Below, piece after piece: positions 3,731 to 47,663 of a DNA stretch of 50,247 bases (position 1 is its first letter; every line of letters starts with the position of its first letter). Made by a program: the position numbers and the translations under genes. The stretch spans positions 1 through 50,247 of the forward strand of contig MU008239.1 in assembly GCA_010909165.1 (NCBI GenBank), given 5' to 3'. The DNA is from Anthoceros angustus. Its lineage: Eukaryota; Plantae; Anthocerotophyta. Under the pieces are notes generated by a model that saw only the letters and a program-made list of their open reading frames with translations, did no database searches and had not been told where the DNA came from.

Positions 3731-3965
3731 TCTTCCAAAGAATAATCTATTATTTTTAAGAGGTACTCAAAACTACCAAGAGATTAACCAGCTTTTTATG
3801 TCAGCCAATACTTTTCAAGTGGAACATGCGATCACCCATCATAGCAAAATTTAACCCTTTCCAAACCAATAATCTTTCCTCCACCATCAATTTTCAGAGC
3901 ATGTTTTGGGCAACAAGCTACTACTTTTAAGGAGGTAGTGCAAAACTCCGAAAGTGGTCTACAGG

Positions 3966-23390: not shown

Positions 23391-23835
23391 TCACGCTCAG
23401 CAGATACATGAACGCCCCTCACGTTCTAATCTTCTCCTTCCAGTGTCGTCTCCTCCTCCTAGGGCGTCATAGTGGCTCCGGATGGCGTGTATCCATCTGC
23501 GGCCCATCCTTCCTGCAGCCCATCTTTGCCGTTCCGACTGCGGTCCGTCGCATGTTCTTCCTCCGTTACGGCTGATTTTCCGTTCACATCGGCCTAAGGC
23601 GTCTGGGTCCATCTCGTACTCCCATGGTGACCTTCTTGACTTGTTGCACCTCCATGATTGAGTTTTGAGTGGTTACCCTGATCAATTCTCCCTGCGGTTT
23701 ACGCACGGATCTCTTAGTAAAGTCGCGGCCTGGGCGGCCCAGTTAGTTTTTTCGGGAAAGGGTAAAACGAAGAGAGAGAATTTTCAATTGGTAAAATTTT
23801 TTACTGAATAAGGTGGAAATTGTAACAATAGAAAG

Positions 23836-24005
23836 CATAGACTGATGGATGGAAACATTTTACCATCCAAGTCAAAACTAGAACAGAGGGTAAAGAATGG
23901 ATCAACCAAGTGAATATAGAGTAAAAGAGTAGGCGATGAATGGAAACATTTTACCATCCAAATCAAAACTAGAACAAAGGGTAAAGAATGATCACCAAGT
24001 GAATA
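23836..24005. repeat. ~90-bp tandem repeat near the terminus of copy 1
   Basis: gatg.atggaaacattttaccatccaa.tcaaaactagaaca.agggtaaagaatg..caccaagtgaata x2. Confidence 0.8.
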
Positions 24006-24960
24006 GCAAGTGCAACGAAATACCATGGTAGATTGTAATCTGAGTGGAGGCCTAATTCCAACACAATCGCTAATCGCGAAAACATCTTCGTACCATTCAT
24101 ACGGATCCGGGATATACAAAAACCAACAAAGAAATATCATCTTTGCAAAGTTTCTGTATCCGTAATAATTCAAAATAACAGAAAATAGAAAATACCGAAT
24201 AGTTGATCCTCCTTAAATTACAAATCTACATATACAAAGTAAATTAGGCTTGTAATTAGAGTTAGGAATACGCAAAGAAAAGTTCATTAGAAAAGATTCC
24301 CACCTTATTTTGGAAAATTTGTACAATTGTAGAGATTGAAGACATAGTTTCCAAGACCACTTGGTTTAACCGGCAACTTGTCCAACATTATCATAGTTTG
24401 CGGTTGATGAACGGGGCTTTGGAGAAATTCTTCATCTTCACGAAAGTTGAGAACCTAATCAAACATTACCGTCTTAGTCTACTAAAGTAAAATTAGCGAT
24501 CAAAATCAAGGGAACAATTAAATCAACTTACTTTATATGGTTTTCCATGGATGGAAGTGGGCGCTGAGTGACTAACATTGTCAATAGTTTGTCCTTTCCC
24601 CGCAATCGCATTTCTGTTGCTCCCTGCTTGAGTTTTTCCTGCTGTTTGAAATACTCTTGCCTCCTTTCGACATTTTTCTCCTTTGGATCTCCAAAGCTTT
24701 CTCTCTTGCTTGGAAACTCGGTTGTACACCTTGCGCCTCTGTCAATCAATCATGATTCTAAATCATTTGCCGTTGAAATTCCCTTTTCGATTCTCGTCAT
24801 TCTCCCTTTCTCGGGTAATCTCGGCAAAGACGCTCAAACCTGCTTGAACCACCCTTCTCAACCCCATCTTTGCTCTACCATATCCAAAGCTATAGGCGGT
24901 GTCTCCACAATCCTTCCTGTTGCACTTCGATTCGATGTCTCACCACAATGACTTGGCACA
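23990..24960 (-). CDS. Crypton-like copy 1 'ORF C': spliced coiled-coil region ending in CWFLYIPDP (separate gene or C-terminal exons of the recombinase)
   Basis: ERRQEYFKQQEKLKQ.. and CWFLYIPDPYEWYEDVFAISDCVGI, matching ERRQEHIKHQE and CWFLYIPDPHEYYLTENVLSISDFGGI in copy 2. Confidence 0.55.
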
Positions 24961-25992
24961 GGCCTCCAGGAGGCATCACCTCCACCACACTCGGGGCACC
25001 ATCAATGTTGAAATGAGGAACCAAATGCTCGTCAAACTAGTGGTGGGGCTAATACTCTGCCCGCAAACATAGAATCGAAACACAATAAGAGAATGAAGGA
25101 TGAAACTTAAACCACCTTTACACTTAACCTTTTCAACATGTCGATGTTGAATACACCCGATAATTAGTGCTGTCAATCAAGATCTTTAACACTACTTTCG
25201 GCACTTGACAGCTTCCAAAGCTTCACAATCTGGAGCGCAAACAACAACAAACATTGTATGAAATATTGGGTGCAAACCAGCAAGGAGAACCAAAATACAA
25301 CAAGAAGATACTAAGGTCCAGTCTTGACAAAGGGCCCCTTTCATGGTGGATAGCAAGGGTGCGATTGGCAACACACAGCAACAAAAAGCAACAAAAAGAG
25401 TCAAATACCAATCGCAAAGAAGAAAAGAAACAAACCTTCGACACCAAAACGACTCATAAAATGCTTACACGGGCCTCCAATAGGAGGCATCACCTCCACC
25501 ACCAGCACCATCAATGTTGAACCGAGGACCGAAATGCTCGTCAAACTAGTGGGTGACACGATCTTTAGTGGTGGGGCTAATACTCGCCAAAACATAGAAT
25601 CGACAAACACAATAAGAGAATGAAGGATAAAACTTAAACCACCTTTACACTTAACCTTTTCAACATGTCGATGTTGAATACACCCGAGTTGGTCCTGTCA
25701 ATCGAAGATCTTTAACACTACTTCGGCACTTGGACAGCTTCCAAAGCTTCACAATCTGGGCGCAAACAACAACAAACATTGCATGAAATATTGGGTGCAA
25801 ACCAGCAAGGAGGACGAAAATACAACAGAAGATACTAACCGTCCAGTCTTGACAAAGGGCCGCTTTCATGGTGGATAGCGAGGTGGTAACGATTGGCAAC
25901 ACTGCAACAAAAAGCAACAAAAAGAATCAAATACCAATCAAAAAGATTAAAAGAAACAAACCTTAAACCAAAACGACTCATGGAATGCTTAC
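24961..25992. repeat. ~510-bp internal tandem duplication specific to copy 1
   Basis: ggcctcca..ggaggcatcacctccacc..aaaacgactcat..aatgcttac at 24961-25470 and 25472-25992. Copy 2 has a single counterpart at ~46150-46540. Confidence 0.9.
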
Positions 25993-26109
25993 GTTGAACT
26001 TGTAGGCAACATTGAGCACAAGCCTATGCACAACAAATTCTTAACATCAGCATCCTTTAGTAGAATCATAATCTTCTCCAGTAAAATCACTCCCTTCATG
26101 GTAGAAAAT

Positions 26110-28276
26110 ACTTACATCTTCTTGATGGAAAAACTATATCCGAGTCCCATTGACAACAAGCGGAAGCACACCCAAGTCATCCCGCATCCGATCGAAGTTC
26201 TTCATTGAGCAACTCATTGTATGATCTTCTTTCACGGAACTAGAACCACAGGGCATGCTTTTGCTTGCCCGACGGTCATACAAAGTCCATGCAGAGAACA
26301 CATCATGTCAATAGAAGGCATAAACAAGTTGACGGCATCAACAAATAGATCCTACCTTGAAAATCCAGCTTTGTGGCGGTGGCCTTGATCCGAGGGCACG
26401 AGCCATGGTCACGCGTAATCATCGTTACACGGCGGCTCTTGTTCGTGTAATACCCATCAAGACCAGCTCGCCATTGTCTTCATATATTTTGAGAGCATTC
26501 CTTTGGATACCGGAGTTTTGCATACCAAGCCTACTCACGAGAAAATTAAAGTTAGCATCCAATGGAACACAAACCTAGAACCCTTATCAAAAGATACTTA
26601 CATTCGATCTTGGATTATCGATGGGAGAATTGAAAAGAAACCCTTGGATAGATATATTCTTGTCATTTGCATCCACTTTGGACAATGGTCAATGACGGCT
26701 TTAAATGTTTGAATAACATCCACCTCATAGTTTTTCACTTTTGGCGGAAGTGCTCACTCGTAGTTGCGCATATCAACTTTGTAATTCTTGAATATGGTCC
26801 TCGTATCTGCGAGGCAACACAAGGAGGGTATTACAACACAAACAAGGTATCATACACAGAGTATTACCACACAACAAAGCATCAATCAAAACATGGACAA
26901 ACGTCAGTACAAAAACGCCTCAATCCAAGAGAATGAGAAGTCCACACATTAACGTTGTGCAATTCCTCCCGCCACGTGCTCAAACGATTCATGCAAAATA
27001 TGCACACCTATTCCATCGAATCGTTAGAAGCAAACAACAGAAGTATTGCAAAATGCACACAAGAAGCTAGGAATCGAACACAAACCTTTTCTCGGGCGCC
27101 GCCCAAAAGAACATTGATGGTCACGTGGGCAAGAATTGTCTCTCATCATCATCGATATCGGTTTCACCACCTTTCGGCGATACTATACCAAGGTCTTTCG
27201 ATTTTCATGGAAGCAACAAGTGCGGCGACAACCATTGAACACGTGAAACATATTGATCACAGCACATCGGACCCAAGACGGCTTTGCTCCGGAACACACT
27301 TCCTTATCAAAATGCGATTGAACCCTCGAAGAAGGACATCAACCCGCACCAATATACGAAATCAACATAAAATGAAAAAACAACGGAACAGAAGGGATGA
27401 AGACTTACGTTTGAGAGAATCTTGAGTTGTCTTTTAAGTTCGAACTTGGTGGAAAACGGTATCAATATAAGGTTCAAGTCCTTGTGAGGAATGTCCTCTA
27501 TTGCACTATCCCAACCCCTCACACCACTCACTTTCATGAAAGACTTAAGACGACTCCGGCACCAATTATTTTGGCGTTTGGACTTGTCCTCACCACCACT
27601 CATTGCATCATTCACGGCTCCCTCAGGAATCGAGGGGTCAAACCCTTGGTCCCTAAAATGGGCCTCATCTTCAATTTCTTCCATGCCCATAGCAAAATCA
27701 TCCTCAGGATCAGCACACCTCAATCTCTCAAACATATCAATACACTCCTGGTCAGGGATAACTTCAGGTTCAGGGAGCGACAGTGGAATGGAAAACTCAC
27801 CAGGCTGAAAGGAATTCAGAGACTTATCTTGCTGCACGGGAGCAGCCACACAGCCATTTTGAGACTGTAGGCATGCTTTCGCAGCGCAAAGGACCATGGA
27901 ATCAGTAGTAATCAGATGGACATTCTCACCAACAAACTTAACCCCTCTCTCAGAAACAGGACAATAGTTAGTAATCTCGACAAGGGACCCTCCACCAAGG
28001 GCACAGTCGGTGTCAACCCTTCTTCTCTTCCGAGCAAATTCAGAGCACGGGCATCCTCCTTGGATGAAAAGTGCCTTGGCGGTTTGGGAATGGACTTTTC
28101 GGCACCAAATATGTCCCTCACTATGCACAAGGACCGTCAACTTTACCATCATCCTGCAGAGGGTGGGTTGCGGTGTGAGCGATGGCTTTTAACACGTTGT
28201 CGAGTGTACGGCTTGGACATGACAAAGGTGCACACTTCTTGCCCGGTCCAGAGGCCCGAGGTTTTCTTTTAGCCAT
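26110..28276 (-). CDS. DUF3504/Crypton-type tyrosine recombinase, copy 1 (at least 6 exons, frameshifted in this consensus)
   Basis: MAKRKPRASGPGKK.., NNWCRSRLKSFMKV, DIPHKDLNLILIPF, FFEGFNRIL, RGG-EELHN (~26980), YYTNKSRRVTMITR (~26430), HKxGFSR/YDR, with GT-AG introns. Confidence 0.8.
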
Positions 28277-29599
28277 CGCAACAGAAGTCATCGAACAACG
28301 TTGAGATGTACAAACAACATAACAGATAACAAACGAAAAGAAAGAACTCACATGCGCCTTGAACCGGATGAGAACCTGTTGGAAGGTCTAAAAGTTGATT
28401 ATCAGACAGTCTAGACAAGAGAGGATATGGGGCGGTGCCCCAAAACACAACTTGGGGCTAGACATTGTTAGAGTTGTTATTCCTTCCACTTTCATTAAGG
28501 ATGACACATAGAACTCTAAAAATACACCACATATGGGAAAAATAAAGTGAAAACCCTTTTTCAAGTACAACAAGAGTTAGACGTACAAACAACCATAGAT
28601 GTACAACATATACATCAGACCACACAAGTAAAACAATCAAGCGCTCATTGGACAACAGACTCATCCATGCCACACAACAACACATATTTCTAGATTAGAA
28701 TCGAAAACATCCAAAGATGTTGGGAGGCAAACCCTCGAGCGTTGCACACTTCAATACACCGCACATAAACACCGGTCTATGAGATTAAGCTCCAAGACAT
28801 GCACAATACACCATGCCCAATCCAGATTCACTTTTCAATGACACAATGCGAGATGGTGATTACCAAATCTACAAGCGGGTCTTCAACGACAAAGCAGCGC
28901 AAAAGCGATTATCGACACCGCAAAAGTCAACTAACGACGCACAAAAGCACGCGAGCAGAACGAGAAAAAAAATCATTGCGATAAGAACAAACAACGCTAC
29001 ACAATCAACACTACGAGACAAACAAAGTCATTACGAGCGAAGTCAAGTAGGATCACATGACACGAAGACAAGAAAGCGTAGACGGATGATACCATACAAA
29101 AACCAAGGACAACAACCATACATGGGGACACTTCCAACAAGCAAATAAGGATTGTATGACATAAAGATCACTACTATGAACAAACCGAAAAACACTCAAG
29201 CTCTAAGTCTAAGAAAGTTCGGTCGATTTCAAAAGGAACGAGGGGGGTCGTTTTCATAAAAGCAAGCACCACCATTGACGCTGGCTTCAACAACAAACAC
29301 GATGTGCAACGAACAACAACAATACAAGAGGAACGGAGAGCGTGTCGGCAAAGACAAATCGGATAGCAATTGAGCATCAGAGACATCTTCTAGCAAAATA
29401 GACAAGCACGTACAGACAAAGAACAAGATCATCGACCGGGGGACACACATGATAAGGCCAAGACCGAGCGGCGCGAATACCGCGAACATGACCAAAACCG
29501 CACAAAACAACAAGAGCAAAACAATATACAAGGAGGCGACACAACGTAAGCGCAAATGACAACGATTTTCAAAAGGAGCGATAGACCTTAACACGAAAC

Positions 29600-30360
29600 C
29601 TTGGCCGGTCAAACACGGACCTTGTGTCAAAACACCTTGGCTTGGACTTAGCAACAACGGCCTTAGAAGCAAAGACCTTGACCTTGATGGGAAAGCCTTG
29701 AAAACAACCTTCAAAGCAGAAAGACGACTTTGCCTTGAGCAAACTTTCTCGAGACCTTGGCCTTGACGAAGGGGTAAAACCTTAGCCTTTGGAGAAGGCT
29801 GAAAGAACACAGGCTCAAAACTTGAACAAAGGCCTTAGCCTAGAACACCTTGGCCTTGACAACAAAAGGGCTTAGCCTTGAGCACAGAAACAACCTTGGC
29901 TGAAACTAGAACTGACTCCTAAGCCTTGAGCAAAACGGATGCACCTTGGCCTACGAAGGCGGCAAGGCCTTGGCCTTCAAACACAGACGGAATACCTTGG
30001 CTGCGAAACTAATCACCGGACGCCTAAGCAGGAGAAGAGGTGGACCACCTAGGCCTCAAAGGAAGAAAAAGACCTTGGCCTTTGGAGAAGCCTTATATAG
30101 GCCAAAACCTAACCTCCTCTGCCGCGCCGTTCTCTCTACCAAACCTGATTTGAATTCAACCTAACATTCCGAGAAATCCAAACCTCAGGTTCGCCATTAG
30201 CGCCGCCACTTCAACCAAACCTAGGTTGGATTCCAAACCTAGCCTAGCTCAAACCTAATCTCCGAGCCGTAGCCGCTTCCAACCACGCCACGCCACATAC
30301 CGTCAACCATCTAGAACCCTAAGTTTTCTGTTAAACATACACTTAGGGTTTTCTTCACCA
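29600..30360. promoter_or_regulatory. Central divergent promoter region of copy 1
   Basis: Reiterated ccttggcc motifs, a minus-strand TATA (ggcctatataagg, ~30091-30103), and aacctag/aaccctaa (telobox-like) motifs. Copy 2 has the same arrangement. Confidence 0.45.
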
Positions 30361-31844
30361 CACGCCCGCCAGTGCTCTTCCTGGTCGATCTTGACGACCT
30401 TTGGCGGTCGCGGCATCTCGTTACGATCGCGCCTTTGCAGTGTGTGTTGGTGGGCCTCCGCTCGCGCCATCGGCTCCACTTCCCTTCATCTTACGCCCAC
30501 CACGTCGATGGGCTCTCGATCGCCTAGTCTTTGGTTCCATCCCTTGCATGTTCACTCAATTCCACTCTCTCGATATTGGTTTGGAACTACGATCAAGTTC
30601 ATTTTGACGTGGCATCCACTCCTTAGCTCTCCGCGCCAATTGGACAACTTGCTTCTTCCTCAGCGGCGTGCCCGATCGTTCTCCTTACTCTTTCGTTCTA
30701 GCCCTTTCGGCATGTCCCCGTGGGTATTGGGTCCACCGTTTACATGCTAGGATCTCCCTCCCGCCCGCTTTTGGTTCCGATCCATTGCGAGTTTCGTGTG
30801 CCTTTGCACCGCCAAGGGTTAGCTGGAAAAGTTCTCTTGTGGGTTATGGTGCTCTTCCTTTGTTCCCACCGTCGATCGCATTTTTGTTTGTCTTTGCACG
30901 ATCCGCTTTCGGTGACTGGGTTACTTGCTAAGTTGCTCTCTCTTGGTCTTGTTTTTCTCATTGTTTTACTACATGCCTTGTCCTTCTTACCCACATGGCT
31001 TGTCCCTGCCAGTTCCTCTCTCCTGTCGACCTGCATCCGCATCACGAGTTTTCAATTTGGGTTGCTTGGTATTTCGAGGTGTAAGCCGAGAGGCTCTTTG
31101 TGCTGCGTTGTCACACGTAAGCTTACATCCTCTTTTGGTGTTGGCGCATGTCGATTACTTAAGTTTCTCTCACTTAAAAGGACCAAGTTTGTAAATCTCG
31201 GTTGGTCACCATCACATCCCACTAGTTGGGCATCATTGGTAAACGGCATGGAGTTTTGATGGGCTAGTGTTTTCAATCACTTTGTCATGCACTTAATAAA
31301 CTCGACCTCTCATCTCCGGTGTTCCAGCCAAAGGTCACGCAAGAAGGCGCCATCCTAGTGTAAATCGTCCGTCACAATAATTCTATGGTCATCTTTTGAC
31401 GGCGTGTCGGAGGGTTGTGCCTGGGAAACTAATGAATGATTGGGTTGACGGAAGCAGGGGGTAAGGGTTAGCAAAGAGTCTCGTTCTTGAAGTCTTTTGA
31501 ACATAACTATCCTGCGTAAAACATGAATCTTGTGTGCGAGTTTGAGAACATATTCGCGCTTGTTGCTTCCAACAAATTCGATTGGTGATGACAGCTTTTA
31601 ACAAAATTCGATGCGGGATCTTGCGACAATTGGTTTCGTGAAGCGTCGGAAGCGACGTATCGTGACGTGGTAATACCTTGCTCAACCCGTTCTTTGTTTT
31701 GCGCGCAATGCGTCTTGTGCTTGATTTGTGATGGTCCACTAGTGTGTTCGATGGCTTTTCATTTGAATCGATGGAATCGACAACGAAAGCAATAACGATT
31801 TTCAAATCCAAGAAGGTACTTGATTGCTACATGTATTATCGTTC

Positions 31845-32020
31845 TTACTTTGCTTTTACTTTTACTGCTACTTTTGCTTTACTTTACTTTTACTTTTACT
31901 TTTACTTTTACTACTTTGCTACTGCTCTTACTTTTACTTTACTTTGCTACTTTGCTAACCTACTTTACTTTTACTTACTTTTACTCTTACGACTTTACTA
32001 CTTTTACACTTTTACTTTTA
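31845..32020. repeat. (TTTTAC/TTTAC)n low-complexity tract inside the gene B region of copy 1
   Basis: tacttttacttttacttttac.. run; absent at the homologous place in copy 2. Confidence 0.9.
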
Positions 32021-32039
32021 TCTATTGTCAACCCCTCAG

Positions 32040-33600
32040 ACAGAACTCACATGGCGCCACCACAAGCGCCATTACAAATTACTTCCCACCCATGGGGATC
32101 CAGATATGACGCTAACGCAGTTTGAACCACCACCGGAGATCGGAAAGATCGTAGAAAAGGTATTCGTGAAAAATGATTGTTGTTAGTCCTGTATATTCTT
32201 CTCGTTGGTCGAGTCTAACAAAACCCGTGGGTTTCATCCTCTGCGAGCACACAATGTTCTGTGATGGACAAACAAGACCTTAAGCATCTTTGCGAGATGC
32301 CCCTTGATTGAATAAGATAAAGAAGGTAAGCACTTTTCCTATTTCATAAACTTGATCTAAGTATGCTCGAATCCAAAATCCTAACCCTAAATTTATCTCT
32401 GCAGGATATAAAAAGAACCTTGAACAACGACTCAATTGGGCTGAAAGCGTACACACTTGTGGAAAGGTTTAATGGACAGATTTCAATGCAAACAATGTTG
32501 GAGGGATATCAAAGTTCCATCCAGATCGGAGGTAATCAAATTAACATTCATACCTTCTTTCACACCTTCTTCTTTTAACTTGGCATTCTGAGAATCTTTG
32601 GAAAAACAAACGCCAAAAATATAAAGGACAAAGTCGATGAGATTGACAACAACATTGACAATGCGGCCATCTCAATCGGTACACAAAATGTATTTTGTAT
32701 TTAATTTGTTTTAATATGATTTTGGTTTAAGAAAGTAATGATTTTGGTTTTGATCGGGCAAAAGAGAAAATAGATGACTTCATGGAGAATGGACCAACTT
32801 ACGGGCCGTCACAAGAGTTCACCGAGTTTGGAAAGTGGATGAGCAATTTTCAATATCCACCACTTTTGAAGACTTTAAATCCAAGTATCACCAATTTGGG
32901 AGCATAGTCTAAAAGAGAGCGCAGCCCATCTTGAATGAAGATGGGTCCAACCCACATTCGAGCAGCAGAGATCCAAGCAAGTAAGCGAAAACTCCCTTTC
33001 TCTTTCTTATTTTTTACATATAACTCTATGTAATGTAATTGTATGCATTGAATGCGAGATAGGGGCAGCAATTGAAAATAAGGAGTTGAAAGCACAGACT
33101 TGTTGTCTCTCATGGAAGAACCGGAGACAACGAAAAATATTCAAAAGGTACATCGTTTGAAAGATATTATCTTGCATTCCAAGATGAATTCTAATGAATA
33201 TGTTTCTTGAACATACGATCACATTTCCAGTTGGAAATCTTCACAACGTGTTTAACGCTTGTCGAAAAGGTATATGCAAAGAAAGATCTTCTCCGAATTG
33301 AAATGGAGGTAAATGACTAATTACTTTTACTTTTTGTTTGTAGTTATCGAAGAATCAAAGCGAGTTGTTTTCACTCTTTGAGGTGAGTACTAAAGTTGGA
33401 AAAACAATATGTTTTATATATGAATTCGACAAAGGTTTAAATTGCGAAATATTCTCGCTTGGATGAAATATTCAAATGATTATACATTTATCTGGACCAT
33501 ACAATCAGCAGCTCAAAAGTACTATTAGAAGAAGGCCTGGAACCATTTTACACTCCATCTACTCCAATAGAAGATGAGTAGAATTTACCAAAATCATTTG
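32040..33600 (+). CDS. Crypton-like copy 1 'gene B': multi-exon protein of unknown function, divergent from the recombinase (5' part probably extends to ~31.4 kb or further)
   Basis: PTHGDP..EIGKIVEK|gt, DIKRTLNN, GPTYGPSQEFTEFGKWMSNF, WEHSLK, NEDGS, PITFPVGNLH, DLLRIEME|gt. Small AT-rich GT-AG introns are shared with copy 2. Confidence 0.65.
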
Positions 33601-34324
33601 AATTACCTTACGGCGGTGGGAAAGGTAATGCTTTTCTGTAAAAGGATTCAAAAACGAAAACGAGCAATGAAAAATAGTAAGAGAGAAATGACATATAAGC
33701 CGGGTGGTTTAGGCACCAAGTCTATCTGAGTTCCACGGACCTCGGCTCCGCCTCGATGCGGTCGAGTTAGCGTCTCGGCCCCGGACTCGGCGCTCCCTTC
33801 GCCGAGAGGCAGATGGCGTCGGCGCCGCGGCCTAAACGGTCTCGGCCTCGCCACCGGCCGTTCTCGGCCATCGACGCCCGCGTCCCTCACATGAAGCGCA
33901 TCTCCTTCGCCTCTAGTGTGTCCACCTCCACGGGCCTTCTTCCCCTCGCGGCCCGTGGCGCCTCGTTTCCGACCTCGCCAAGTACGGTCCTTCTCGTCAT
34001 TCAAAAGCAGTGCTGTAGTTTTGCCTCTTCCTTTGCCAACGTGTGGCCTCCACAGCCCTCCCATTGCTCACCCTTGAGGAGCATTCCAGCCTCCTCCTCG
34101 CGCCCAGGCTGGCGCCTATCTCCTCTCGGTTCCAGATTGTCCTGCTGCGCTTTTCGCGCTCCCTTCTTGCTTCAGCCTCTCTGGCAACAAAACTTGCTGG
34201 TCAATTCTTGGCCGTCTACAACATGCTCACGTCCTCCCCTTGACCCGTGCCGTGGCAACCAACTCCTCATCGAAATCGGTCATCAGTGGCTTCAAGTCGC
34301 TCTCCGGCCAATCGAGAGATGAAA

Positions 34325-35640
34325 TCAGATTACGATGTTGCTTCCCAGCCTAGTTTCTACGTCATAATCAAACTCTTGCAGCAACAATATCCACCTGGCA
34401 ATCCTTCCTGACAGATCCGGCTTGTTTACAAGGTACTTCAACGCAAAATGGTCAACATGAAACGTCACCTTGCAAGCAAGCAGATAGTGTCTAAACTTCT
34501 TACAGGAGTAAATGATACCAAGACCCTCCCGCTCCGTGGTTGAGTAGTTCTTTTCAGCATCCGTGAGCTGTCTACCCGCATAGAAAATCGGATGATCCCG
34601 TTTCTTCTCATCTTTCTGACTTAAGACGGTCCCAATAGCATAGGCGGACACATCCACGTATACGTGAAACGGCTTCTCCCAATCCGGCGGTTGTAACGTT
34701 GGTGCGCTCACTAAGCTGTCCTTCAACTGCTGGGAAAAGCCTCCTGCCTTGCGTTCGTCCATTCGAAGGGTGTATCCTTTTTGGTTAATTGTGTCAACAA
34801 GGCTGCCTTCTTGGCGAAATCCTTGATGAACCTCCATACCCACTAGCCCTACAAAAGCTCGACCTGCCTTACCGTTTGAGGTCGTCCATCTACTATCACC
34901 TACTTTCTCCTTATCTACCTGTAATCCTCGAGACTCGATGTGCTAACAAAATGCCCTCCGTCATGCCAAAATAACACTTCCGGATGAAGTTTCATGTTCG
35001 ACTCCCTGCACTTCTGAAAACATTGCCTCAAATGGTCTAAATGCAGGTTTCTTCTCCCGAATACGCAGAAATCATCCAAGAATACCTCCATGAACTTCCT
35101 CAGAAAATCTCGGAATATCGCGTTCACCACCCGCTGGAAAGTGGCCGGGGCATTGCACAATCCGAAAGGGAGCTTCGAATAGGCGTAAGTCCCCCAATCC
35201 GTTGTAAACGTTGTCTTGTCCTGATCCTCCCTCCGCAGCGAAATTTGATTGTACCCAGAATATCCATCCAAGCTGACATCTCATGTCGACTCATGTCCAG
35301 CCTACTGTCCATGAAAGGTAAAGGGTGATGATCCTTCTTCGTTGCTTCGTTGAGTTTCCTGAAATCTTGACACACTCGAACCTTTCCCTGCTGCTTCTTT
35401 GGTACAATCACGATGGGTGCGACCCACTCACGGTGAGCACGGGTAAATCACTGACCTCCAAATATTGGTCGAGTGATCCTTAACAACCATGGAATACTTG
35501 GGATTCAGCTGTTGCTTGATCCTCACCAGTCTTGCCCTCCTTGGTCTATTCGATGTATTCCAATTCTTCCGGTATCCTGTCATGTCTCGTAATCTTGAAG
35601 GCAAACACATCGACATATTCTCTAAGCACTCCACGAAACT
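34325..35640 (-). CDS. Reverse transcriptase and RNase H of the Athila-like host
   Basis: [113 protein letters not shown]. Confidence 0.95.
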
Positions 35641-36079: not shown

Positions 36080-36360
36080 CAACCAAGGCCTACCTATTAA
36101 AACCTTATAGCCTAGATCCAAACCGCCGCATCACAATGTAGGTAAGATGGAAGGTGAGACCCCCAATTCTGATGGGCATCCTTGACACCCAGTGGCTTTC
36201 TCCTTATGCAGGGCCATCCGTAAAATACTCGGGCGGGTGAAACTCGGTGAACCCAAGTTGATGAGTTGTCTCCTCGTCATCAAGTTGACTCCGATCCGAA
36301 TCTAATGGCACGTTAGGCACCAAACACCCCATAATCTCAACCTCAATCTCGGGTGCCCCA
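36080..36360 (-). CDS. Aspartic protease of the host element (frameshifted)
   Basis: EIEVEIMGCLVPNVPLDS-GSGVNLM. Confidence 0.7.
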
Positions 36361-37099: not shown

Positions 37100-37995
37100 G
37101 TTTTAGCGTTGGGCGTGCCTCTTCTGCGGCTCGGTGAACTGACTCTGGTCGTTTGTCACTCGCGTCACCCGTGCATCCGGGATCCCCATTTTATGTCCCA
37201 ATTCCTTACATACGGCAAAGGGTACATAACCTACTTGCTTCCAGTTACGGGCATTCGTTTGAGTAGTGACACAGGGCTCCGCAATTTGTAACACACCACA
37301 AATTGCCGTTGTAGCGGATGGTCTCCATTGTCCGCGATGTTGGACGTGAGCCATACCTTGAGCTGGTGTCGGTTGGTAAGTCGCTCTCATTGATTGAGGT
37401 GGTCGACTTCCGATGACCGCTTTTGTACTTAATGCGCCTCGTCCACGTACCAATAATCTCCACAGCATGCGGTTTCCATGATTTACGGCATGTCGTGGTG
37501 CGCGAATACATTCTCGGTTGGTGTGTCCCGTTTGATGACAGATCGAGCAATACACCAACTGCCTCGCGGGCGAAGGAGATCTTCGTGGAGTTTGATTTTT
37601 CACTGCCTTGACCTCCAACTCGGTCAACCGCTTGGTCAAAGCCTCCACTTGTCCAGCAATCCCTCCTCCTGCTGCAGACGTTTCTCCCCTCTCCATCCGA
37701 CGGACCGTCTTCCCTTTCCTCTCCTTCTCCAATGCGCGTTCCGCCTCCTCTTGTCGTTTTTTGACCTTCTCCAGGTCTTTCCTCATTCGTCGTTCGTAGG
37801 CCTTCTCTGATTCTTCATCCGATGTAGAGCTTTCCTCAGTTCCAGTCCTCACTTTCGGGAGGGGCGGGCTGGTGGAGGCGGAGGAAGGCGAGAGCTAGAT
37901 CTCCTCGATCCTTTCCTCTTCTTATGACTTCGCCTCTTCTTCCTCCTTCTCCCCAACTCGTGGACTCCCATTCCTCGGCTAAGCGGAGGGCCCAC
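37100..37995 (-). CDS. Gag C-terminal part of the host element with zinc knuckles
   Basis: YCSICHQTGHTNREC (CX2CX4HX4C), plus further Cys/His clusters (CVTNCGALCHYSNECP; AVCKELGH). Confidence 0.8.
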
Positions 37996-38242
37996 CGCTA
38001 ACGTGTTAACAGACGCTGGGAGGGCGTCACGGCGAGAAAGGTCGAGGCCGTTAGGCGGGCCGTTCTGGGCGTCTTGCCCGACGGGCGTTCGTTCCAGGCG
38101 TGGGAGGCGGTAGTCACGGGGCCGAGGCCGCGACTCGACGGGAGGGCGGGGTCCTGTCTTTCTTAGAAGTTGCCTTGTGCAACCACTTTAAAAGTCTTTT
38201 CTCTCTCTTTCAGTTTTCACTTCGAGTTTTCACTTTCACGCT

Positions 38243-39900
38243 TTACGTTTGCCTTTTCACGGTTGGATTTATCCTTTCTAACTTTCTTCGCTGGCGTTGA
38301 AGGGGTGTACCGCGATTTGGATCTCTGTCTTGAATAATACTTCTTTCTTTGTTCATTATACGGTCCAGAAGAAAGTTAATCATTTCGAAAATTTCGTCAA
38401 GCGGGAATATTTTGCGAGCAATGGTAAATGTTAGATATCGTACATATTCAATTTCACCACTATGATATACTAACCTCAAATAGTGCAAACAACTCCTTTT
38501 GATTCTTGATAACTACAAACAAAAATGGTTAATATTTTACCTCCATCTCAAGTCGAAGAAGATCTTGCTCGGTAAATACCTTTCTCACTAATGTGAGGCA
38601 ATGGCTGTGAAGATTTCCCACACTACGGAAATGTGATTGGGCGTTGCAAAGAGGTATCAACGTTAGAATTTATATTTGGAAAATACGAATATCAATTTTC
38701 CTTGTTTACATAAATTGTTACGGAACTAACCTTTTGAATGTTTTTGTAGTTTGGATCTTCCATCGAGTCAACAAGTCATGGTTTTAGCTCCTTATTTTGA
38801 TATTTCTACATTACCAAAACACAAATTTCATTAGTACTACATAAACTGATTCAAATAAACTATACTAAGAATAATATAAACCGATAACACTTACTTTTGG
38901 ATCTCCATGTCTTGCTCTAGGGTTGTCGACCCATCTTCATTCGGCGGTGCTGGATCTTTGAGGCTATGTTCCCAAATGGGAACATATCTATTTAAAATCT
39001 TGGAAGACTTGTGGATCGAAAGTTATCCATCCATTTTCCAAAATCGGCAAATTCTTTCGATGGTCCATACGTTGGTGCATTATCTTGACTCGTCTTTTTC
39101 CTCTTTTGTCCTTTGAAAAACAGTGTAATCATTATATACTACTTACAAATATACTAATTATTAATTACAAATATACGCAATTACGATGAAAGATGGTTTG
39201 TGTTGATTTTGTCATCCATTGCTTCAATTTTCTCCTTAATTTCCTTAAATGCAACTTGTTCGTGACACTCGTAAACAAATAATTAGTATTTATTACTGTA
39301 AATAAATACATATAATCGAGTGTTGTTGTTTACCTCCAAAATCGATCAGAATTGAGATCATTGTCCATTAAACCTCGGACCCAGTCATTGTTTCCAACTC
39401 TAATTGATTGTTGAGATTCTTCTTAATATCCTGTAACCATATACAACTAAAGTGAGTTGCGAGTTATCGTTTATGGATCCTCTAGAAGTTGCAACCAAGT
39501 CTTTACCTTTTTAATTTTTTCCGGTTGGGGCACGCAAAGGAGCAAGTCCTTTTGTCCATTGATGTGAACATAGTGTGCTCCGTTAGTCTTGTATCAAAGA
39601 TATCGAGTTAGAAATGTTCACGGGAGATTCAATTGATAATTGAAATGTATTACCTTTCTCAACTATCTTTCGATCTCAATGAGAGGGATTTGAACTTGAC
39701 TGTCATCATATCCTGGATCCCCATGGGTGGGAACATTGTTGTTTGATCGTTGTTAAGGTTTGTTGGGTCTTTACTATTGTGTCGCTCGGAAAAAATCATT
39801 TAGCCATGGATTATCAAAAATGGATTTGGCGGTAGGCGAAATGATCATTACCTTCTTGGATGTCGACCATTTCATCGTTGCTCTCATTCTCGGATGCCAT
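38243..39900 (-). CDS. Crypton-like copy 2 'gene B' (multi-exon, unknown function; 5' exon may extend to ~41.1 kb)
   Basis: PTHGDPGYDD..KIVEK|gt, DIKKNLNNQLELENNDWVRGLMD, APTYGPSKEFADFGKWMDNF, IWEHSLKDPAPPNEDGS, EQDLLRLEME|gt, KIFPLDEIFEMINFLLD. Confidence 0.65.
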
Positions 39901-41439
39901 TCGTAATAAAAGCAACTCGGGCCAATGAATAACTTGAACTTTTGAAAAAATGCACGTGCTTGCGACTCTTCGGCAGCTTGCACAGTGCGGCATGTTGTGC
40001 ATGCCGCGTACTTTCAGCTGATAAAATATACTACGGCAACAAAGATGGATATGACTTACGCTCAAAGGTTTTGCGTCTCGTTAAGATATTCGACATGCAA
40101 TTTTGACGAATAGTTAGGAAAAACACGGTTAGAAATAAAATATGATTACGGACTTTTGAACCGTCGAGTGATCCAATATCAAGAGCTGCGTACGCGATGC
40201 ATGCCCGCTTACGGCATGTTGCGGCGCCTATAAATACCTCGGCATAAAGTTGACTCGACAAGTTGTCACGGACGCGATGTTGACTCAAACATTGCTGAAT
40301 GACCAATGCGACTCTAGCTACATTTTGAACCAGGTTTAAGACAATGTATGCCTAAGGAAAGGATTTGGCATGCGAGTCAGACCTCTATAGGTTGAGGCGC
40401 GTTAGTGCGGCTCTTGTGCACCGCATGGCGTCTTGAGTCAGAGCGGGTTACGTCCGGATGATTAACCGAGATTAAGCGAGAATAAAGAGGCAGTTAAGCG
40501 AGAAAGCGTCAAGCGGTCGAGAACTATCGAAGACTTGCTAGCGTTTCTTGGTCGTGTAGCGACTTTGAAGCGAAAGCTAGAAAGATAAGTTCGCTACAGC
40601 TTACCGTTCCCATGTCTTCTTGCGGTTGGACTGAAGGGTGTGTAGAGTCTCGAGGTTTTCTGCAACACATTCAAGGTAAGAAAAGGCTTTTGCAAAAACT
40701 TACAACGATAAGCTATTCACAAGCAAAGGAGGCAAGTCGCGAGCGGGGGTGTTAGCGAGGCGGCAACAAAAGAATAAAAAGGCGACCACGGCGTAAGAGT
40801 GTTTGTCGTCGTACCACGGAGACAAGGCGAGACCTCTTTTGTCTCCTTGCGCGGGAGCGGCGGCCCGGTGAGTGGAAACCGTCGCGGGAAAATCTACGAC
40901 TCGGTTCACGGAGCAACTCTTCCGTGTTCGAACCTTCGCGTTGTGGTATCCTGCGGTGAGCGGTCAAGCATGAGCATAGGCACAAAGACGACAAACAATT
41001 TCAAAGGCAAACAAACTCGCGGAAGTTTTTCACCTTTGTTGCCAATCGCGGCGTCTTCGTAAGCGTGCTCTTCACCTCGAGGGCCACGATCGATGATGAG
41101 GTATTGCACGAGGCCGTCGCGAACCAAGGAGGAAGCCAAGCAGTCGGAGGGTGTTTGATCCGAGGGACGTTCGGGCTCTGGGCGGGAAGGCAGACTCGCT
41201 ATTCACTCTGAGAGAAAGAAGCGGCTGTTGGCGTGGTGGGCGTAGGCGTTCATAGGTGAAGGCAGCCTTGCTGAGGTGAGCAAGGGCGTGAGAGAAAGGC
41301 GGCAGCCGGCGTGGTGGGCGTAGGGGCGTGGGTAGGGCGGAACCCGGCTGGCGGAGATGGAACTAGCGTAAGAGAACCGCAGGAGCTGTAGGCGAGAGTG
41401 ACACACCACGGCGTGCTAGGCGCGTAGAAGGGGCCCTAG

Positions 41440-42320
41440 CGGCGTGGTGGGCGGTGAAAGTGTAGGCGTGAGTGCTCCTTAAATAGACTTGAATTAGGGT
41501 TCCGATGCTTGAAGAGCCGTGCGTGGCGGTGTTCATTGGCCAGCGAGGTTCGTTTCGCCACATCAGAGGTTCGGAAATTAGGTTAGGTGTTGCATGGCTA
41601 GGTTTGGAACAAGGTGACTAGGTTGGTTGAGGAGGGCGCGGAGAATGGCGACCCTAGGTTGGTTGGTCTCTCGGTAGAGTAGGTTTGGTATTTTCAAATT
41701 TGGTTGGTAGAGAGTGGCGGCGACAGTGAGAAGGGTTAGGGTTTTGGGGCCTATATAAAGCGGGTTCACGGACCTCTTTGGTCTTTTGCTGGTGCTTTTG
41801 GGCTTGACCTTCCATGCGTCATTCTTCCTTGTCCTCTGCGTCTCCCTTTACTCCCCTCTTTCTCTATGTCCCTCGCACATGTTTGTCCGATTTCCAAGGT
41901 TGTTTCTGATTTCAAGTTTCATTGATCGGCTTTTGTCCGAGGCCAAGGCGGTTGGTTTCTCACTTGTTGCGGTCCAGGCCAAGGTGCTCGCTTGTCAAGG
42001 CGCTTTATCCGCTCCTAGCGATCCCTTTTTAGTTGCCTTAGCGTTTCTGCGCCCGTCTTGTGGTGTTTGCATCATGTCGGGTGATTTTTTCTTGTTAGCT
42101 TGCCGACGGTCTGCTTTGTAGTTGGTTGGTCCGTTTCGTATTTGATGTGCTTTTTAGGGGTTGGTTTTCGTTGTTCGCGTGGTTTTTTTTATGTTTTACG
42201 CAATGCACGGTCCGAAGGCCAAGGTCTTCTTCTTTGTTATTCGAGGTTTCTTTCATTGTTGTTTTGTTCGAGGCCAAGGGTTTTGCTTGTGTTGTTCTTG
42301 TCCAGGCCAAGGTGTCTTTC
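41440..42320. promoter_or_regulatory. Central divergent promoter region of copy 2
   Basis: Minus-strand TATA-like tatttaa (~41480), plus-strand ggcctatataaag (~41750), ttagggtt/ctaggtt motifs, and reiterated aggccaagg. Confidence 0.45.
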
Positions 42321-43935
42321 CTCTCGCTTTCGACTATAGTTGTTTTACTTTTCGTTGTTCTACTTGCCTCCCTTGTTTGTCTGTATGTGTCGTTCTTTGT
42401 GTGCTTTTTTTCTTTCTTTCTTGTGTTCTCATTTTTTCTCTTGTTGGTTTTATGTTTTGTACCTCATCACTTCACGTTGTCTTGTGAGTCTGTTTTTTGC
42501 TTTGTGAATATGTTGCTCGCGATCTTGACTGCTTGTTTTTGTGGTATTGGCCTTTTAATGTGTTTGCTTATTCGTTGTCGTCGTTATCTTCACGTTCAAA
42601 GGCGTGATGCCTATGCTGTAATGTCTTGTTCGCATCTTGTGTTTTTCATCTCTCTGTTTTCATTTTCTATATATACTATGTCTTTTAAATGATCATTTTT
42701 GTTTTGGTGTTTATCTCGTTTAGCTCACGTTCATTGTGTTTATCAAACTAGTGTCTTTGTTTGTATCTTATCTCTGCATTTGTTCTTCTTTTGAAGTATA
42801 AACTTGTTCTTTATCTCTCGCTTGTGTCTGAAGGCCAGGCGTTGTTCGACTTGATTTGTATCTCTGCTTTTGTACTGTGTTCATCTCTCAAAGTGTTGCG
42901 TTTAACTTTCGGTTGTGTTACATTACGTTCTGTACTTGTCACATGCGGAGAGCTTGTTCCATGCATGCCTTTGGGCAAAACATTTTAAAGGTATTTGTCT
43001 CTCGATTAAGTTGTTCACTGTTGCGGACAATTATTTGTGTATATGGTTTGTCGAGTTGATCGTTATTGTCGTTTGCATCTTGATGTGTGCTTCTTTGTTT
43101 TCGCCTGCGTATGGAAGGTAGATCACTTTATTCTTGTCTTTATCGCGATTGTCTTACATCTTTTGCTTTATCGTCCATCTGACGTTTTTAGTCACTTGTC
43201 GTTGTCTAATTTGATGTGTTTAGTTTCTGTTTATGTCGACTTTTTATTCTTGTTGATTGCATTATATCGGGTTTTACGTGGTTTGTCTTTTTTGGTCATG
43301 GTTGGTGTTGCAGGGTCCAATCTGGTTCTTTTCTTGCTATGTTAGTTTCATCGATCTTTGGTTTGTTAACTCTTTTGGCCTTTTGTTGCGGACCATGCAC
43401 GGAAAATTCTTAGGGTGGTCGGGATTTTAGTAAGAGATGTGTACACCCTTGCCTTTTGTCTTTCGTTTGTTCTTGGACATTATGTGCACCTCACTAAACT
43501 CGTTTCTTTGTAGGCGAAATTTGTCATCGTGTGAAGGGCTCTTCCAACATTCTAATTCAGTCTGCATGTATCGGGATAACTATTTGCACGAGTGTGAAAT
43601 TCGGTTTCTTGGTGTCGATCAAGGCTCGTTGTGTCTTTGGGGCTAATCTATCAATATTATTGGCGAGAAAAAAGTGTTTGGGAAGTATGTGGGTTTGTTA
43701 AAATGGAAGTTTTTCTCACTAACTTAAAATGGAGGATCAAAATCTAACAATGTATAGATCAAAATGATGTGTATCTCCCATCCCTCCCTTCGATTGTGGT
43801 ATAATCAACTTTTAGACCCTTCAGAGTTCTCATTTGAAAGCATTCACCTCCATGTAAGTCTTTTCATATTGGTTTGCAAGTTCATTAACTTTTCAAATGT
43901 TTTTTGTGTTTTGATCACCGGTGCTTTTCTTTCAG

Positions 43936-46055
43936 ATGGCACCCAAACCTGGGCCTGGACCGGGAAAGAAGCAAGGGTCCTGGAAGTCATGGCTAAGCCG
44001 TACACTAGACAGCGTGTCAAGTCAGCCGTCCTCACTGCAACTCATCCACTGCAGGATGATGGTAAAGTTGATGGTGTCTTGGTGCAGTGAAGGAACATAT
44101 TTAGTTCCAAAAAGGCATTCCTAAACCGCCAAGGCACTTCTCATCCAAGAAGGATGCTCGACGTGCAGCTGAGTTTGTGCAGGAGAGAAGAAGGGTTGAC
44201 ACTCGACCTATGGCATTGGTTGAAGGTCCTCTTGCGGAGATTACTAACTATGTCCCATGTCGAGAGTCCGGTTGTGGGGAGAATGATTTCTTGATAACGG
44301 AGGATCCCATGGTTGTGAGTCGCCAAAGCCTGTCTAGAGTCTAGAGATTTGTGTCTGGTTGAGCAGATGCTTCGTGATTTTCCATGCTGTTGTGGTTCGA
44401 CCACAGAGTCATCCCCGATCAAGAAGTGCTCGATATGTTTGAGAGGCTAAAGTGTCTTTGGTCCGAAGATGACTTTGCCATGGGTATGGAGGAAATTGAT
44501 GATGAAGAAATTTTTGAGCGGATTTGACCGTCGGAGTGTGAATGATGCTTTGAGTGGTGGGGAGGATAGGTCAAAGGAATAAGCGGTGTCAAGTCGTCTC
44601 GGGGCCTTTATGAAAGTGAGTGGGGTCGGGGATGGGATCTGCTGAGGATATTCCTTACAAGGATCTAAATCTTATTCGATACCCTTTTTCCATCAAGTTC
44701 GAATCAAGGACAAGAGATTTTCTCGAAGCGTAAGTAGTGATGTTTTCTTACTTGTTGATTTTGATAGTTCGACTTTCCTTCACATGACGATTCTTGATCT
44801 TCACTTGTGCGGTGATGTCTTTCTTTCGTGGGTTTAACCGGATTTTAACAAGGAAGTGCATCCCAACCAAAGCCGGCTTGGTTCGATGTTCGGTGATCAA
44901 CTTGTTTCATGGAATTTTCCATGGGTCCCGAGCGGTTGGTTGCGTCCATGAAAATCGCAAGGACCTTGGGATTGTGTCATGTCGAAAAGAGGTGAAGTTG
45001 ATTTAATGATGATGAGCGTGATTCTTTCACACGAGATCATCAATGCTCATTTGGGGGGGCTCAAAAGGTAATATTGTTGGTTTTGGGGTGCACTTTGATT
45101 GTTCATTTATGGTCTTAAACACAGCCCTTATGCTTATTTTTGCGGTGTGCATATTTTTGCATGACCAGGTTTGGGGTTCGAGGTGGTGAAGAGTTACATA
45201 ACCTGCTCATTAGGGACTTCTCATTTGCATCAGATTCAGGCGGACCTTTTGTTCAGTAGGTGTAGTCTTTTTGTTTTACTGTTTGTTTGATGTTTTGATG
45301 TACTGTATTGAGCTCGTCTTCATTTGCAGGTATGAAGAACGGCATTCAAAAAATTACAAAGTGGATATGAAGAACTACCAGAGTGAGCATTTCCGTCAAA
45401 AGGTCAAGATCTACGAAAGGGCGTCATCGAAACCTTTAAAAGTATTGATCACTCTCCCAAGTGGTCGCACATGACAAGAATTTGTCAATTCGGGGTTTCT
45501 CTTCAATTCAACCATTGATAACCCAAGATCCAATGTAAGTTTTTGGTTTATTGGGCTTGAGTTTTGTGGTTTTATTTACTAACTGTTTGTTTTTGTTCGC
45601 TTGGTATGCAAAACTTCGTGTTTCAAAAGGAATGCTTGTCAAGATTTATGAAGACCATGGTGAGCGGTGGGCTTGTTGGCTACTACACCAATAAGAGAGT
45701 GTGATGATTACGTTTGTGATGGCTCGGTGCCCTCGATCTTTGGGAGAAGTGTGGTGGCCATAAAGCGGATCTTTGGATTTTCAAGGTAATATGTTGTGAA
45801 AGCTTGTGACATTTGAGTCTTTGTATGCTCGTTCCTAACGTTCTCATATGTTTTCGAGATATGGCCGTCAAGCAAAAGCAGTACCGCAAGAGTTCTTGTT
45901 CGTGAGCAGCGATCTTATCGGGAGCTTTTAAATGAAGAACTCAATCGGATGCGGGATGATTTAAGGGTGTTCTTTCCAACTGTTGAATGTAACTCCGAAA
46001 TAGTATTTTCAGTCGACTGAAGATCGGTCCCTTGCAAGTGCAACACGTTAGTAAT
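43936..46055 (+). CDS. DUF3504/Crypton-type tyrosine recombinase, copy 2 (exons approx. 43936-44729, 44800-45067, 45125-45255, 45330-45534, 45598-45785, 45858-46055)
   Basis: ATG directly after an AG acceptor (MAPKPGPGPGKK). Then DIPYKDLNLI..FFHQVR, MSFFRGFNRILT, MTRFGVRGGEELHNL, YEERHSKNYK, PIDNPRS, WYAK, YYTNK, GGHK..FSR/YGR. Confidence 0.82.
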
Positions 46056-46559
46056 GTAAGTGTTTGAGATTTGTATCAAGTATGTAGGGACTTGTGTCAA
46101 AATCCTGTCGACTTGATTGATTTGTCGTCTTTCCTCCCGCCACTGTTATTCATCATGAAAGCGGACCCACACAATGTTGGGAACTAAGTTTTTGCACCAT
46201 GTGGTCACTTTGTCTTGAAGTTCGAGTTGGTATTGTGAAGTTGCTTTGTTGTAGTCGCCATGTTAGTTTTTTTAATCATCGGTTCTTGTTTTTTTGCACC
46301 TTAAAAAATTGCCAAGGCATCCAGATGGATACTAGGACCAACGGGTGTTCTACTGAAATTCCATATGTTGACAAGGTTGATTCTTTGTACATTTGTTGTT
46401 TTCATTCATTTTGGAGTTTCGATTGTGTTCTTCTTGGCGGTTGTAATCCTTCGACTAGTGTGGCGACTTCATCCCTCATTTCAACATTGATACACCACAG
46501 TGGATGCGGTGGCCCCTCTGTTGGAGGGCATTGTGCGTGAGTGTGATCATCATCGAAGT

Positions 46560-47464
46560 TAACCAGACAAAGTGTGGGTGGTAGCACCTCGATATATTGC
46601 ACTGTGACGCAAATGGAAATGTAAGTGGCTTTGAGCGGCTTGCCGGATCTCCCGAGCAGGGGTGGAGAATGACAAATTGAAGCAGAAATGGAGTTCAGTG
46701 ACAAAAGGATTTGGAGGCACTTATAGAGAGGCAGGCGGCAGTTGAATTACGAGTCTCTAAGCAGAGAAAGCCCTTGAGATTCGGAGGAGAAATGCGAGAG
46801 GAGACAAGAGCATATTAAGCATCAAGAGCGCAGCGGAAAGAGCGCAAGAGGTTCGGAGATTATGGGAAAGACAACGAGAAGGATGTGCCTCGAGATATTT
46901 CAAGCTGCTATGCGAAAATCCGTCGGGATCGGTAAGCTTTATGCTTTTATTAATCAGTTACTAGATTGAAAATTAATGGTTGTGTTGTTTTAGGTTGTGA
47001 CCTTGCGGAAGATGGTCAATTTCGTCAAGTCCTCGCTTCATCAATTGGTTGCCAATTATGATAATCTTGTACAAGTACCAATCAAGCCAAGTGGTCGTGA
47101 AATTACATTTTCAATCAGTATAATTGTACGATAAATTTCCCAAAATAAGGTGAGTATCAATGTTTTTATTTTAGTGTTTACTAGTAGTAATTACGGTTTG
47201 GGTGCTAATTTTGGTTTTGTTTGTAGGTTTCTTGTTGAAGCGAGTTCACTCTATTGGGTATTTACTCTTCATTAGTTGAATCAGTATTTCATGCACGGAT
47301 ATACAGGAAACTCGAAAAGGGTTCTTTGTTGGTTTTTGTATATCCCGGATCCGCATGAATATTATTTAACAGAAAATGTTTTGTCGATTAGCGATTTTGG
47401 TGGGATTACTAGATTAGCGATTTTACTACGGGTATTCACTTGGTCGTCATGTTTTCTACTCTAG
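46560..47464 (+). CDS. Crypton-like copy 2 'ORF C' (coiled coil plus CWFLYIPDP region, spliced)
   Basis: KDLEALIERQAAVELRVSK..ERRQEHIKHQE, GT-AG introns at ~46932 and ~47150, and a final exon RVLCWFLYIPDPHEYY. Confidence 0.55.
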
Positions 47465-47663
47465 TGCTGCTTTTCCACCTTGATGGTAGATCATATTCAC
47501 CCCACTTGGCATGTTTTCTACTATATTGTAATGAATTTTACTATACGGTAAAATAATGGCCAAAAGTTCGATTCTCTCTTAAAATTCACCCCACTACCCC
47601 GAAAACTAACCGGGCGTGCCGAGGCCCCACGAGGTCACACTTTACGCTTCGCTCCGCTACCGC

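Follow-up and report, generated by a model that had tools for sequence, protein, structure and literature searches.

Two homologous units in the window

The subject of this study is a 50,247-nt stretch of Anthoceros angustus contig MU008239.1 (GCA_010909165.1), herein called the window, and all coordinates are those of this stretch. Two copies, A and B, of an element of about 10 kb are found in the window. The full unit of about 10 kb contains two divergent intron-bearing genes, with a gene herein called gene B near the left end and a recombinase-like gene toward the right end. We read the two copies as ancient, inactivated members of one Crypton-like tyrosine-recombinase (YR) DNA transposon family, with a rough probability of 0.6. 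The copies are placed as follows.

23694..33895, minus strand: copy A of the ~10-kb element, 10,202 bp; ends +/-45 bp; blocks collinear with copy B
37999..47663, plus strand: copy B of the ~10-kb element, 9,665 bp; ends +/-45 bp; blocks collinear with copy A

The window was compared with itself by sensitive blastn, and the units were then compared with each other in element orientation. Seven collinear blocks were found, with 68-80% identity and about 3.9 kb in total.

Block 1: A 33505-32736 with B 38355-39134; distance from the left end 391 (A) and 357 (B)
Block 2: A 32109-32083 with B 39706-39733; distance 1787 (A) and 1708 (B)
Block 3: A 30268-30090 with B 41568-41761; distance 3628 (A) and 3570 (B)
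Block 4: A 28264-26391 with B 43945-45735; distance 5632 (A) and 5947 (B)
Block 5: A 26206-26126 with B 45931-46011; distance 7690 (A) and 7933 (B)
Block 6: A 24838-24637 with B 46630-46827; distance 9058 (A) and 8632 (B)
Block 7: A 24458-24053 with B 46990-47408; distance 9438 (A) and 8992 (B)

About 60% of each unit was too diverged for alignment at the DNA level. Large nested insertions as the filler of this unalignable middle were rejected, since the block offsets are kept in A and B. Most of the 537-bp length difference between the copies is explained by a tandem duplication that is present in copy A only.

24957-25992, minus strand: tandem duplication, 2 x ~511 bp, 86% identical, 3' of the recombinase stop

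The similarity between A and B is lost within about 45 bp of the proposed ends, and the farther flanks are unrelated. As judged from these alignments, units A and B are homologous end to end, inverted and diverged. An earlier note on this DNA had described two diverged, inverted, homologous inserts. The description is confirmed by the seven collinear blocks at matching offsets and by the end of similarity near the boundaries that the note had proposed.

The recombinase-like gene

The recombinase-like gene was delineated in both copies from the A/B alignment and from the GT-AG sites common to both.

26134..28276, minus strand: recombinase-like pseudogene, copy A; approximate exons 27409-28276, 27086-27324, ~26905-27007, 26602-26806, 26356-26530 and 26134-26230; motifs TNKSRR at ~26446 and RSY at ~26227
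43936..46003, plus strand: recombinase-like pseudogene, copy B; approximate exons 43936-44729, 44831-45067, 45145-~45245, 45330-45534, 45599-45785 and 45907-46003; motifs RGGEE at 45179, SKN at ~45346, TNK at ~45687, GGHK at 45753 and RSY at 45910

The A/B identity alternates between about 80% and about 50% along the gene, with GTAAGT-type donors and CAG or TAG acceptors at the transitions in both copies. Six exons are separated by five introns of about 65-125 nt, and the coding length would be about 540-560 codons. Many frameshifts and stops are carried by both genes, and other genomic copies differ from copy A by 1-3-nt indels at several of its broken places. Both recombinase genes are pseudogenes.

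The motifs follow one another in the order RGGEE (exon 3), ERHSKNYK (exon 4), AWYAKLR...GYYTNKSRR (exon 5), GGHK (end of exon 5) and (Q/R)RSY (start of exon 6). RGGEE and SKN are in frame only in copy B, and TNKSRR is complete only in copy A. Counted on exonic bases, the motif spacings are about 29, 93, 17-21 and 12 codons. In Cre, the active-site residues R173, K201, H289/R292, W315 and Y324 are spaced by 28, 88, 23 and 9 residues. Cre H289 and Y324 are named in PMC13465315. At the level of these motifs, the order and the spacing match the active site of a YR.

Coding constraint was assessed from the substitutions between A and B. Within the motif-anchored frames, position 3 of the codon holds 90 of the 182 substitutions, and positions 1 and 2 hold 49 and 43. 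The three-base periodicity of the substitutions was significant when all gap-free blocks of the recombinase gene were taken together (p=0.001). The third-position excess in the motif-bearing frames indicates that those frames were under purifying selection during the divergence of A and B.

The 281-aa open reading frame (ORF) at 27307-28152 on the minus strand was analyzed in the same way. Substitutions fall on its second codon position from 28200 to 27931, and on its third position only from 27930 downwards. Upstream of 27930 the selected frame is another one (MAKRK...THPLQDDGKVDG...), which contains stops in copy A. The first ~75 codons of the 281-aa ORF are out of the selected frame, and the ORF is partly spurious. 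Within the recombinase gene, conservation is highest in the segment 27931-28276, minus strand (81% identity), which is open in a non-selected frame.

Gene B and the non-coding regions

Gene B is located near the left end of each unit, on the strand opposite to the recombinase gene.

32064..33517, plus strand: gene B, copy A, conserved 3' part
38343..39752, minus strand: gene B, copy B, conserved 3' part

The conserved peptides of gene B in the two copies match each other by tblastn at 3e-10 and 2e-9. At least four short exons with GT-AG sites common to A and B were found, and the codon periodicity was significant (p=0.002). On the strength of these alignments, gene B is a real multi-exon gene with past coding constraint. 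Its product matched no Pfam family, including Peptidase_C48, when stop-free pieces of at least 100 aa and ten pieces of 73-98 aa from the gene B strand were searched, and no protease motifs were seen in the conserved peptides. A 21-mer containing GGATCC is conserved in both copies (32083-32103 in A; 39713-39733 in B). A TTACTT-type microsatellite (31845-32020) is found in copy A but not in copy B, and lies 5' of the conserved exons of gene B.

A third conserved segment is placed between the two divergent genes.

A 30090..30268 (minus strand) and B 41568-41761: conserved intergenic block, ~180 bp, 72% identity

In copy B an acceptor-like tttcag is found immediately 5' of an ATG. The block may serve both genes as a promoter, or it may be a non-coding exon located upstream.

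The terminal regions of the two copies are listed below.

23694..24458, minus strand: right subterminal non-coding region, copy A; 32-nt block at 24102-24133; GATTAGCGATT motif at 24065-24075
46990..47663, plus strand: right subterminal non-coding region, copy B; 32-mer at 47322-47353; GATTAGCGATTTT at 47386 and 47412
33505..33895, minus strand: left terminal region, copy A; GACGC-GG-GCGTC at 33873-33884; three GGCCGAGA repeats at 33773-33869
37999..38355, plus strand: left terminal region, copy B; GACGC-(7 nt)-GCGTC at 38012-38028; GGYCGAGG at 38040 and 38120

The right-terminal block has 80% column identity over its aligned inner part (23960-24480), which is above that of the coding exons, and it is without codon periodicity (p=0.68). 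It was considered as a third coding module and rejected on this p value. The 32-nt block is exact in A and B, in copies that are otherwise about 68% alike, and no such match is expected by chance. It holds the palindrome CGGATCCG and is itself followed by GATTAGCGATT motifs. A conserved 24-mer had no exact match in metagenome contigs, and Rfam gave nothing on the whole window. From its conservation pattern, the right-terminal block is read as cis-acting DNA and not as a third gene. At the left end of both copies, the GACGC...GCGTC palindrome comes first, and GGCCGAG repeats are present as well.

The earlier note had claimed two conserved coding regions besides the recombinase, in a three-module, cargo-bearing architecture. 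Of the two regions, gene B is upheld as coding (p=0.002) and the right-terminal block is not (p=0.68). The three-module architecture is not supported; each unit consists of a pair of genes with non-coding subterminal DNA, and gene B shows no sign of being cargo rather than a gene of the element itself.

Ends of the units

No terminal inverted repeats (TIRs) or long terminal repeats (LTRs) beyond chance were found by self-comparison of the window and by comparison of the first with the last 600 bp of each copy. Reverse transcriptase (RT), RNase H and DDE domains were likewise not found in the units by Pfam searches of stop-free pieces of at least 100 aa and the ten gene B-strand pieces of 73-98 aa. 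The statement that the units are free of TIRs, LTRs and RT, made before this analysis, agrees with the blank self-comparison and the blank Pfam results on internal ORF pieces.

With the ends as proposed, ACCGC is the last sequence of both copies, and the left flank closes with TGCGC in A and ACCGC in B. This gives a putative end repeat of CGC in A and of ACCGC in B, with AG at the start of each right flank, as placed from two old copies only. These terminal motifs fit the Crypton model, in which an end motif would recombine with a near-identical target. When the flanks were joined at the proposed ends, a minus-strand frame stayed open in both copies, as seen by hand translation and with a chance of about 1 in 9.

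Outside the right ends, a 28-column match was found between the flanks, from +12 to +38 in A and from +16 to +43 in B, and its score was reached by 3 of 300 shuffles. The match points to either a longer element end or a preferred target, and the ends are therefore placed to about 45 bp and no better. The matching sequence (23655-23693; 47664-47706) reads TCA.G.TAA.CCACTCA.AAAC.CAATC, at a near-equal offset in both copies. The right flanks of A and B also have ATGGAGGT(G/A)CAAC in common, on the minus strand of the window.

Copy number and genomic setting

A total of 618 contigs of one public DNA run map to 23000-28400, with 80-100% identity and many variant indels. These diverged contigs of a single run indicate that the family is multi-copy in that genome. 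In the same run, the read depth falls at 23543-23723, the site of the junction.

Copy A appears to be surrounded by parts of a Ty3/gypsy retrotransposon, which are outside the element.

34328..35447, minus strand: flank of copy A; RT and RNase H of Ty3/gypsy (RT_RNaseH 4e-35, RVT_1 3e-17)
37106-37894, minus strand: zinc-knuckle gag-like ORF of the Ty3/gypsy element, farther upstream
22229-23067, minus strand: probable integrase remnants of Ty3/gypsy (core motifs by eye; SH3_Tf2-1 E=0.2)

A distance of 430 bp separates the RT and RNase H from the left end of copy A, and the integrase-like remnants are beyond its right end. With gag upstream and the integrase remnants across copy A, the adjoining RT/RNase H is assigned to Ty3/gypsy and not to the unit. 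Copy A probably interrupts the pol gene of a degraded Ty3/gypsy element (22229-37894, minus strand). An integrase zinc finger and core were not confirmed by Pfam on either side of copy A, and no LTRs of the interrupted element were found on either side, including beyond copy B.

Evaluation of the Crypton-like reading

The Crypton-like reading is built on observed properties of the units: they are homologous, the structures of their genes could be laid out, their coding frames were once under constraint, they belong to a multi-copy family, and RT, TIRs and LTRs are absent from them. The identification of the recombinase as a YR draws on this anatomy and on the motifs, which together make it fairly probable. 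From the same features we infer membership in Crypton/DUF3504.

Several points weigh against this reading. The motif set is a composite from two broken copies. Box II reads K-x-x-R in place of the canonical H-x-x-R, which departs from the defining R-H-R-Y tetrad. No Pfam match, PF12012 included, was found for the 281-aa ORF and ten exon pieces at E up to 10. Word-index searches were blank for the 281-aa ORF, for its helical tail (E up to 10) and for the last-exon piece 45817-46017 (plus strand). An exhaustive HMMER search of the 281-aa ORF against 1.84 billion representative proteins gave no match, and neither did its search against metagenome contigs. Sequence searches of the PDB with five pieces gave nothing useful. 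The AlphaFold model of the 281-aa ORF had a mean predicted local distance difference test (pLDDT) score of 40 and was unusable, and a look-up of the box II piece by features in a language-model atlas was empty. The exact termini are uncertain, given the match just beyond the right ends. The data showed neither an intact copy nor an empty site, nor any circle junction or transcript, and the one candidate RNA run contained nothing for this stretch.

An exact-protein look-up of the 281-aa ORF also gave no match, and the first ~75 codons of this query are the part outside the selected frame. The in-frame pieces searched were 30-60 residues long. Since the true in-frame sequence nowhere runs beyond about 60 residues, the blank searches do not count against the YR assignment, but the YR or DUF3504 match that the earlier note had asked for was not obtained. 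The exon-1 tail had Phage_int_SAM_1 (0.92) and QRICH1 (0.90) as its language-model neighbours, which are taken as weak leads and not as evidence. As for box II, the K-x-x-R arrangement is used by type IB topoisomerases, so the lysine need not mean inactivity. The active-site set with this lysine, R-K-K-R-H-Y, would be that of type IB topoisomerases.

The earlier note had proposed a Crypton-like element with an intron-containing recombinase. As regards the gene, the introns and the ordered motifs stand, and the account is amended in that the motifs are composite, the genes are broken and the tyrosine motif is RSY and not RY. As regards the class, the RT-less, TIR-less, intron-containing anatomy, the motifs and the multi-copy state speak for it, and the exon pieces and the ORF yielded no YR or DUF3504 match.

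Alternative explanations

The units could be an unclassified two-gene repeat, in which the 'recombinase' is not a YR, the motif series is coincidental and the movement or copying took place by another mode. This would agree with the blank results of all homology searches, with a box II without the canonical histidine, and with the fact that the sole long ORF begins with ~75 codons outside the selected frame. However, five motifs would then have come by chance into the proper order, at spacings close to those of Cre and each in a selected frame. The searched pieces of 30-60 in-frame residues were too short for profile scoring, and no other transposase domain was found in the units. This explanation is considered unlikely.

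DIRS- and Ngaro-type retrotransposons also have a YR gene and a comparable length, and the units could be remnants of such an element that lost its RT, RNase H and terminal repeats. Near the left end of copy A, at a distance of 430 bp, an RT and RNase H are indeed present. However, that RT/RNase H belongs to Ty3/gypsy, with a zinc-knuckle gag before it and integrase-like remnants after it, and copy B has no RT at the corresponding left-end position. Neither unit contains RT pieces, RNase H, a methyltransferase, terminal repeats (inverted ones included), an internal complementary region or split direct repeats. Unlike in DIRS/Ngaro elements, the recombinase gene has introns, and the conservation of all five introns in both copies argues for copying at the DNA level. 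A DIRS or Ngaro origin is therefore very improbable.

An inverted segmental duplication of an immobile host locus, with a domesticated recombinase-derived gene and its neighbour, would suit the two inverted copies 4 kb apart, the only ones in the window, and the past purifying selection on both genes, but it is scarcely credible beside two pseudogenes, hundreds of diverged contigs of one run that match the stretch, flanks that are unrelated beyond about 45 bp and the probable location of copy A within a retrotransposon pol gene.

Comparison with known systems and proposed mechanism

Among known systems the unit is most like a Crypton, and its features are not those of a DIRS/Ngaro element or a Starship. 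The motifs RGGEE, SKN and TN(K/H)SxR resemble those of DUF3504, which is used here as a lead and not as a test. As in Cryptons of the CryptonA/DUF3504 type (Goodwin 2003; Kojima and Jurka 2011, PMC3212892; PMC13465315), the YR-like gene is the only recognisable mobility gene, RT, TIRs and LTRs are absent, and the ends show only a putative short direct repeat. In Cryptons this repeat is of 4-6 bp, stands at both termini and is common to all copies. Intronised gene copies have been reported for fungal Glomhoppers (PMC13465315). The units differ from a compact single-gene Crypton in their length of about 10 kb, in an additional conserved gene of several exons on the opposite strand, in asymmetric repeat-bearing ends and in K-x-x-R instead of H-x-x-R in box II. 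The host is a land plant, whereas the described hosts of the CryptonA/DUF3504 type are animals, fungi and stramenopiles.

Parallels to single features are found in other Cryptons. CryptonF-1_cRei of Chlamydomonas reinhardtii ends in CACCG and targets CAYCG, and the Chlamydomonas elements belong to the CryptonF group (PMC9977147). This 5-nt end motif near-identical to its target has a putative counterpart in the present units, in which ACCGC ends meet left flanks of TGCGC (A) and ACCGC (B). However, CryptonF-1_cRei is active, with insertion and excision observed, whereas copies A and B are dead and their ends are placed from two old copies. Oomycete CryptonS/CryptonF elements carry a second gene, which encodes a C48/Ulp1 peptidase (PMC3212892). 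These two-gene Cryptons are a precedent for an extra protein-coding gene, but gene B has no visible similarity to C48 peptidases.

Starships of the Pezizomycotina are tens to hundreds of kb long, and have a DUF3435 captain gene at one terminus and cargo that varies (PMC10104507). Like the present units on the Crypton-like reading, they are YR-mobilised DNA elements with more than a recombinase gene. In contrast, the present units are 9.7 and 10.2 kb with equal content, and Pfam searches of the unit pieces gave no DUF3435 match. One and the same gene pair in each fixed ~10-kb copy gives no evidence of cargo.

The family is probably an undescribed plant variant of Cryptons. A more specific proposal is that it represents a land-plant lineage of YR transposons with a fixed two-gene ~10-kb layout including a divergent selected companion gene, with asymmetric ends, meaning differing subterminal repeat motifs and an ultra-conserved 32-nt site, and with a lysine in box II. 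This proposal is tentative, and we hold it at slightly less than even odds.

In the mechanism proposed for the Crypton-like element, the recombinase would bind the subterminal repeats, and the unit would be excised as a circle. Insertion would take place by crossover between ACCGC at the right end of the element and a similar CGC-containing target. The outcome would be a short direct repeat, without target-site duplication. That the recombinase was active, that a circle served as intermediate, that the repeats take part and that gene B may have a role are all inferred.

Significance for plant transposons

Of all classes of eukaryotic DNA transposons, Cryptons are understood least, and their activity has been observed only in Chlamydomonas. 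Published accounts of them concern fungi, animals, stramenopiles and Chlamydomonas (PMC3212892, PMC13465315, PMC9977147), and plant transposon reviews treat them only in passing (PMC11630846). A literature search found no characterised land-plant Crypton family, in keeping with the earlier note, whose author knew of no characterised land-plant family of this kind. If the Crypton-like reading is true, a multi-copy plant family with a partner gene and end motifs extends Cryptons to land plants, and candidate binding sites and an accessory protein are supplied. It would also help to annotate a repeat class that is left unclassified by current plant pipelines. Since both copies are dead, their value is that of landmarks for intact copies elsewhere in the genome.

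Other features in the window

Further repeats are present outside the two units. Direct repeats of about 300 bp, 83% identical, at 14053-14354 and 19653-19942 flank a stretch on the plus strand in which an RVT_1 fragment is found at 17118-17552. The region 14053-19942 is probably another old LTR retrotransposon. Positions 791-1877 and 3197-3946 are linked by short repeats, 75-85% identical and both direct and inverted, which form an unrelated small repeat family. The window contains one N, at position 21080. A stop-free piece of 283 aa at 5819-6667, minus strand, has a Rhodanese match right at the Pfam cut-off (22.2 bits, 31 residues) and possibly represents a host-gene exon.

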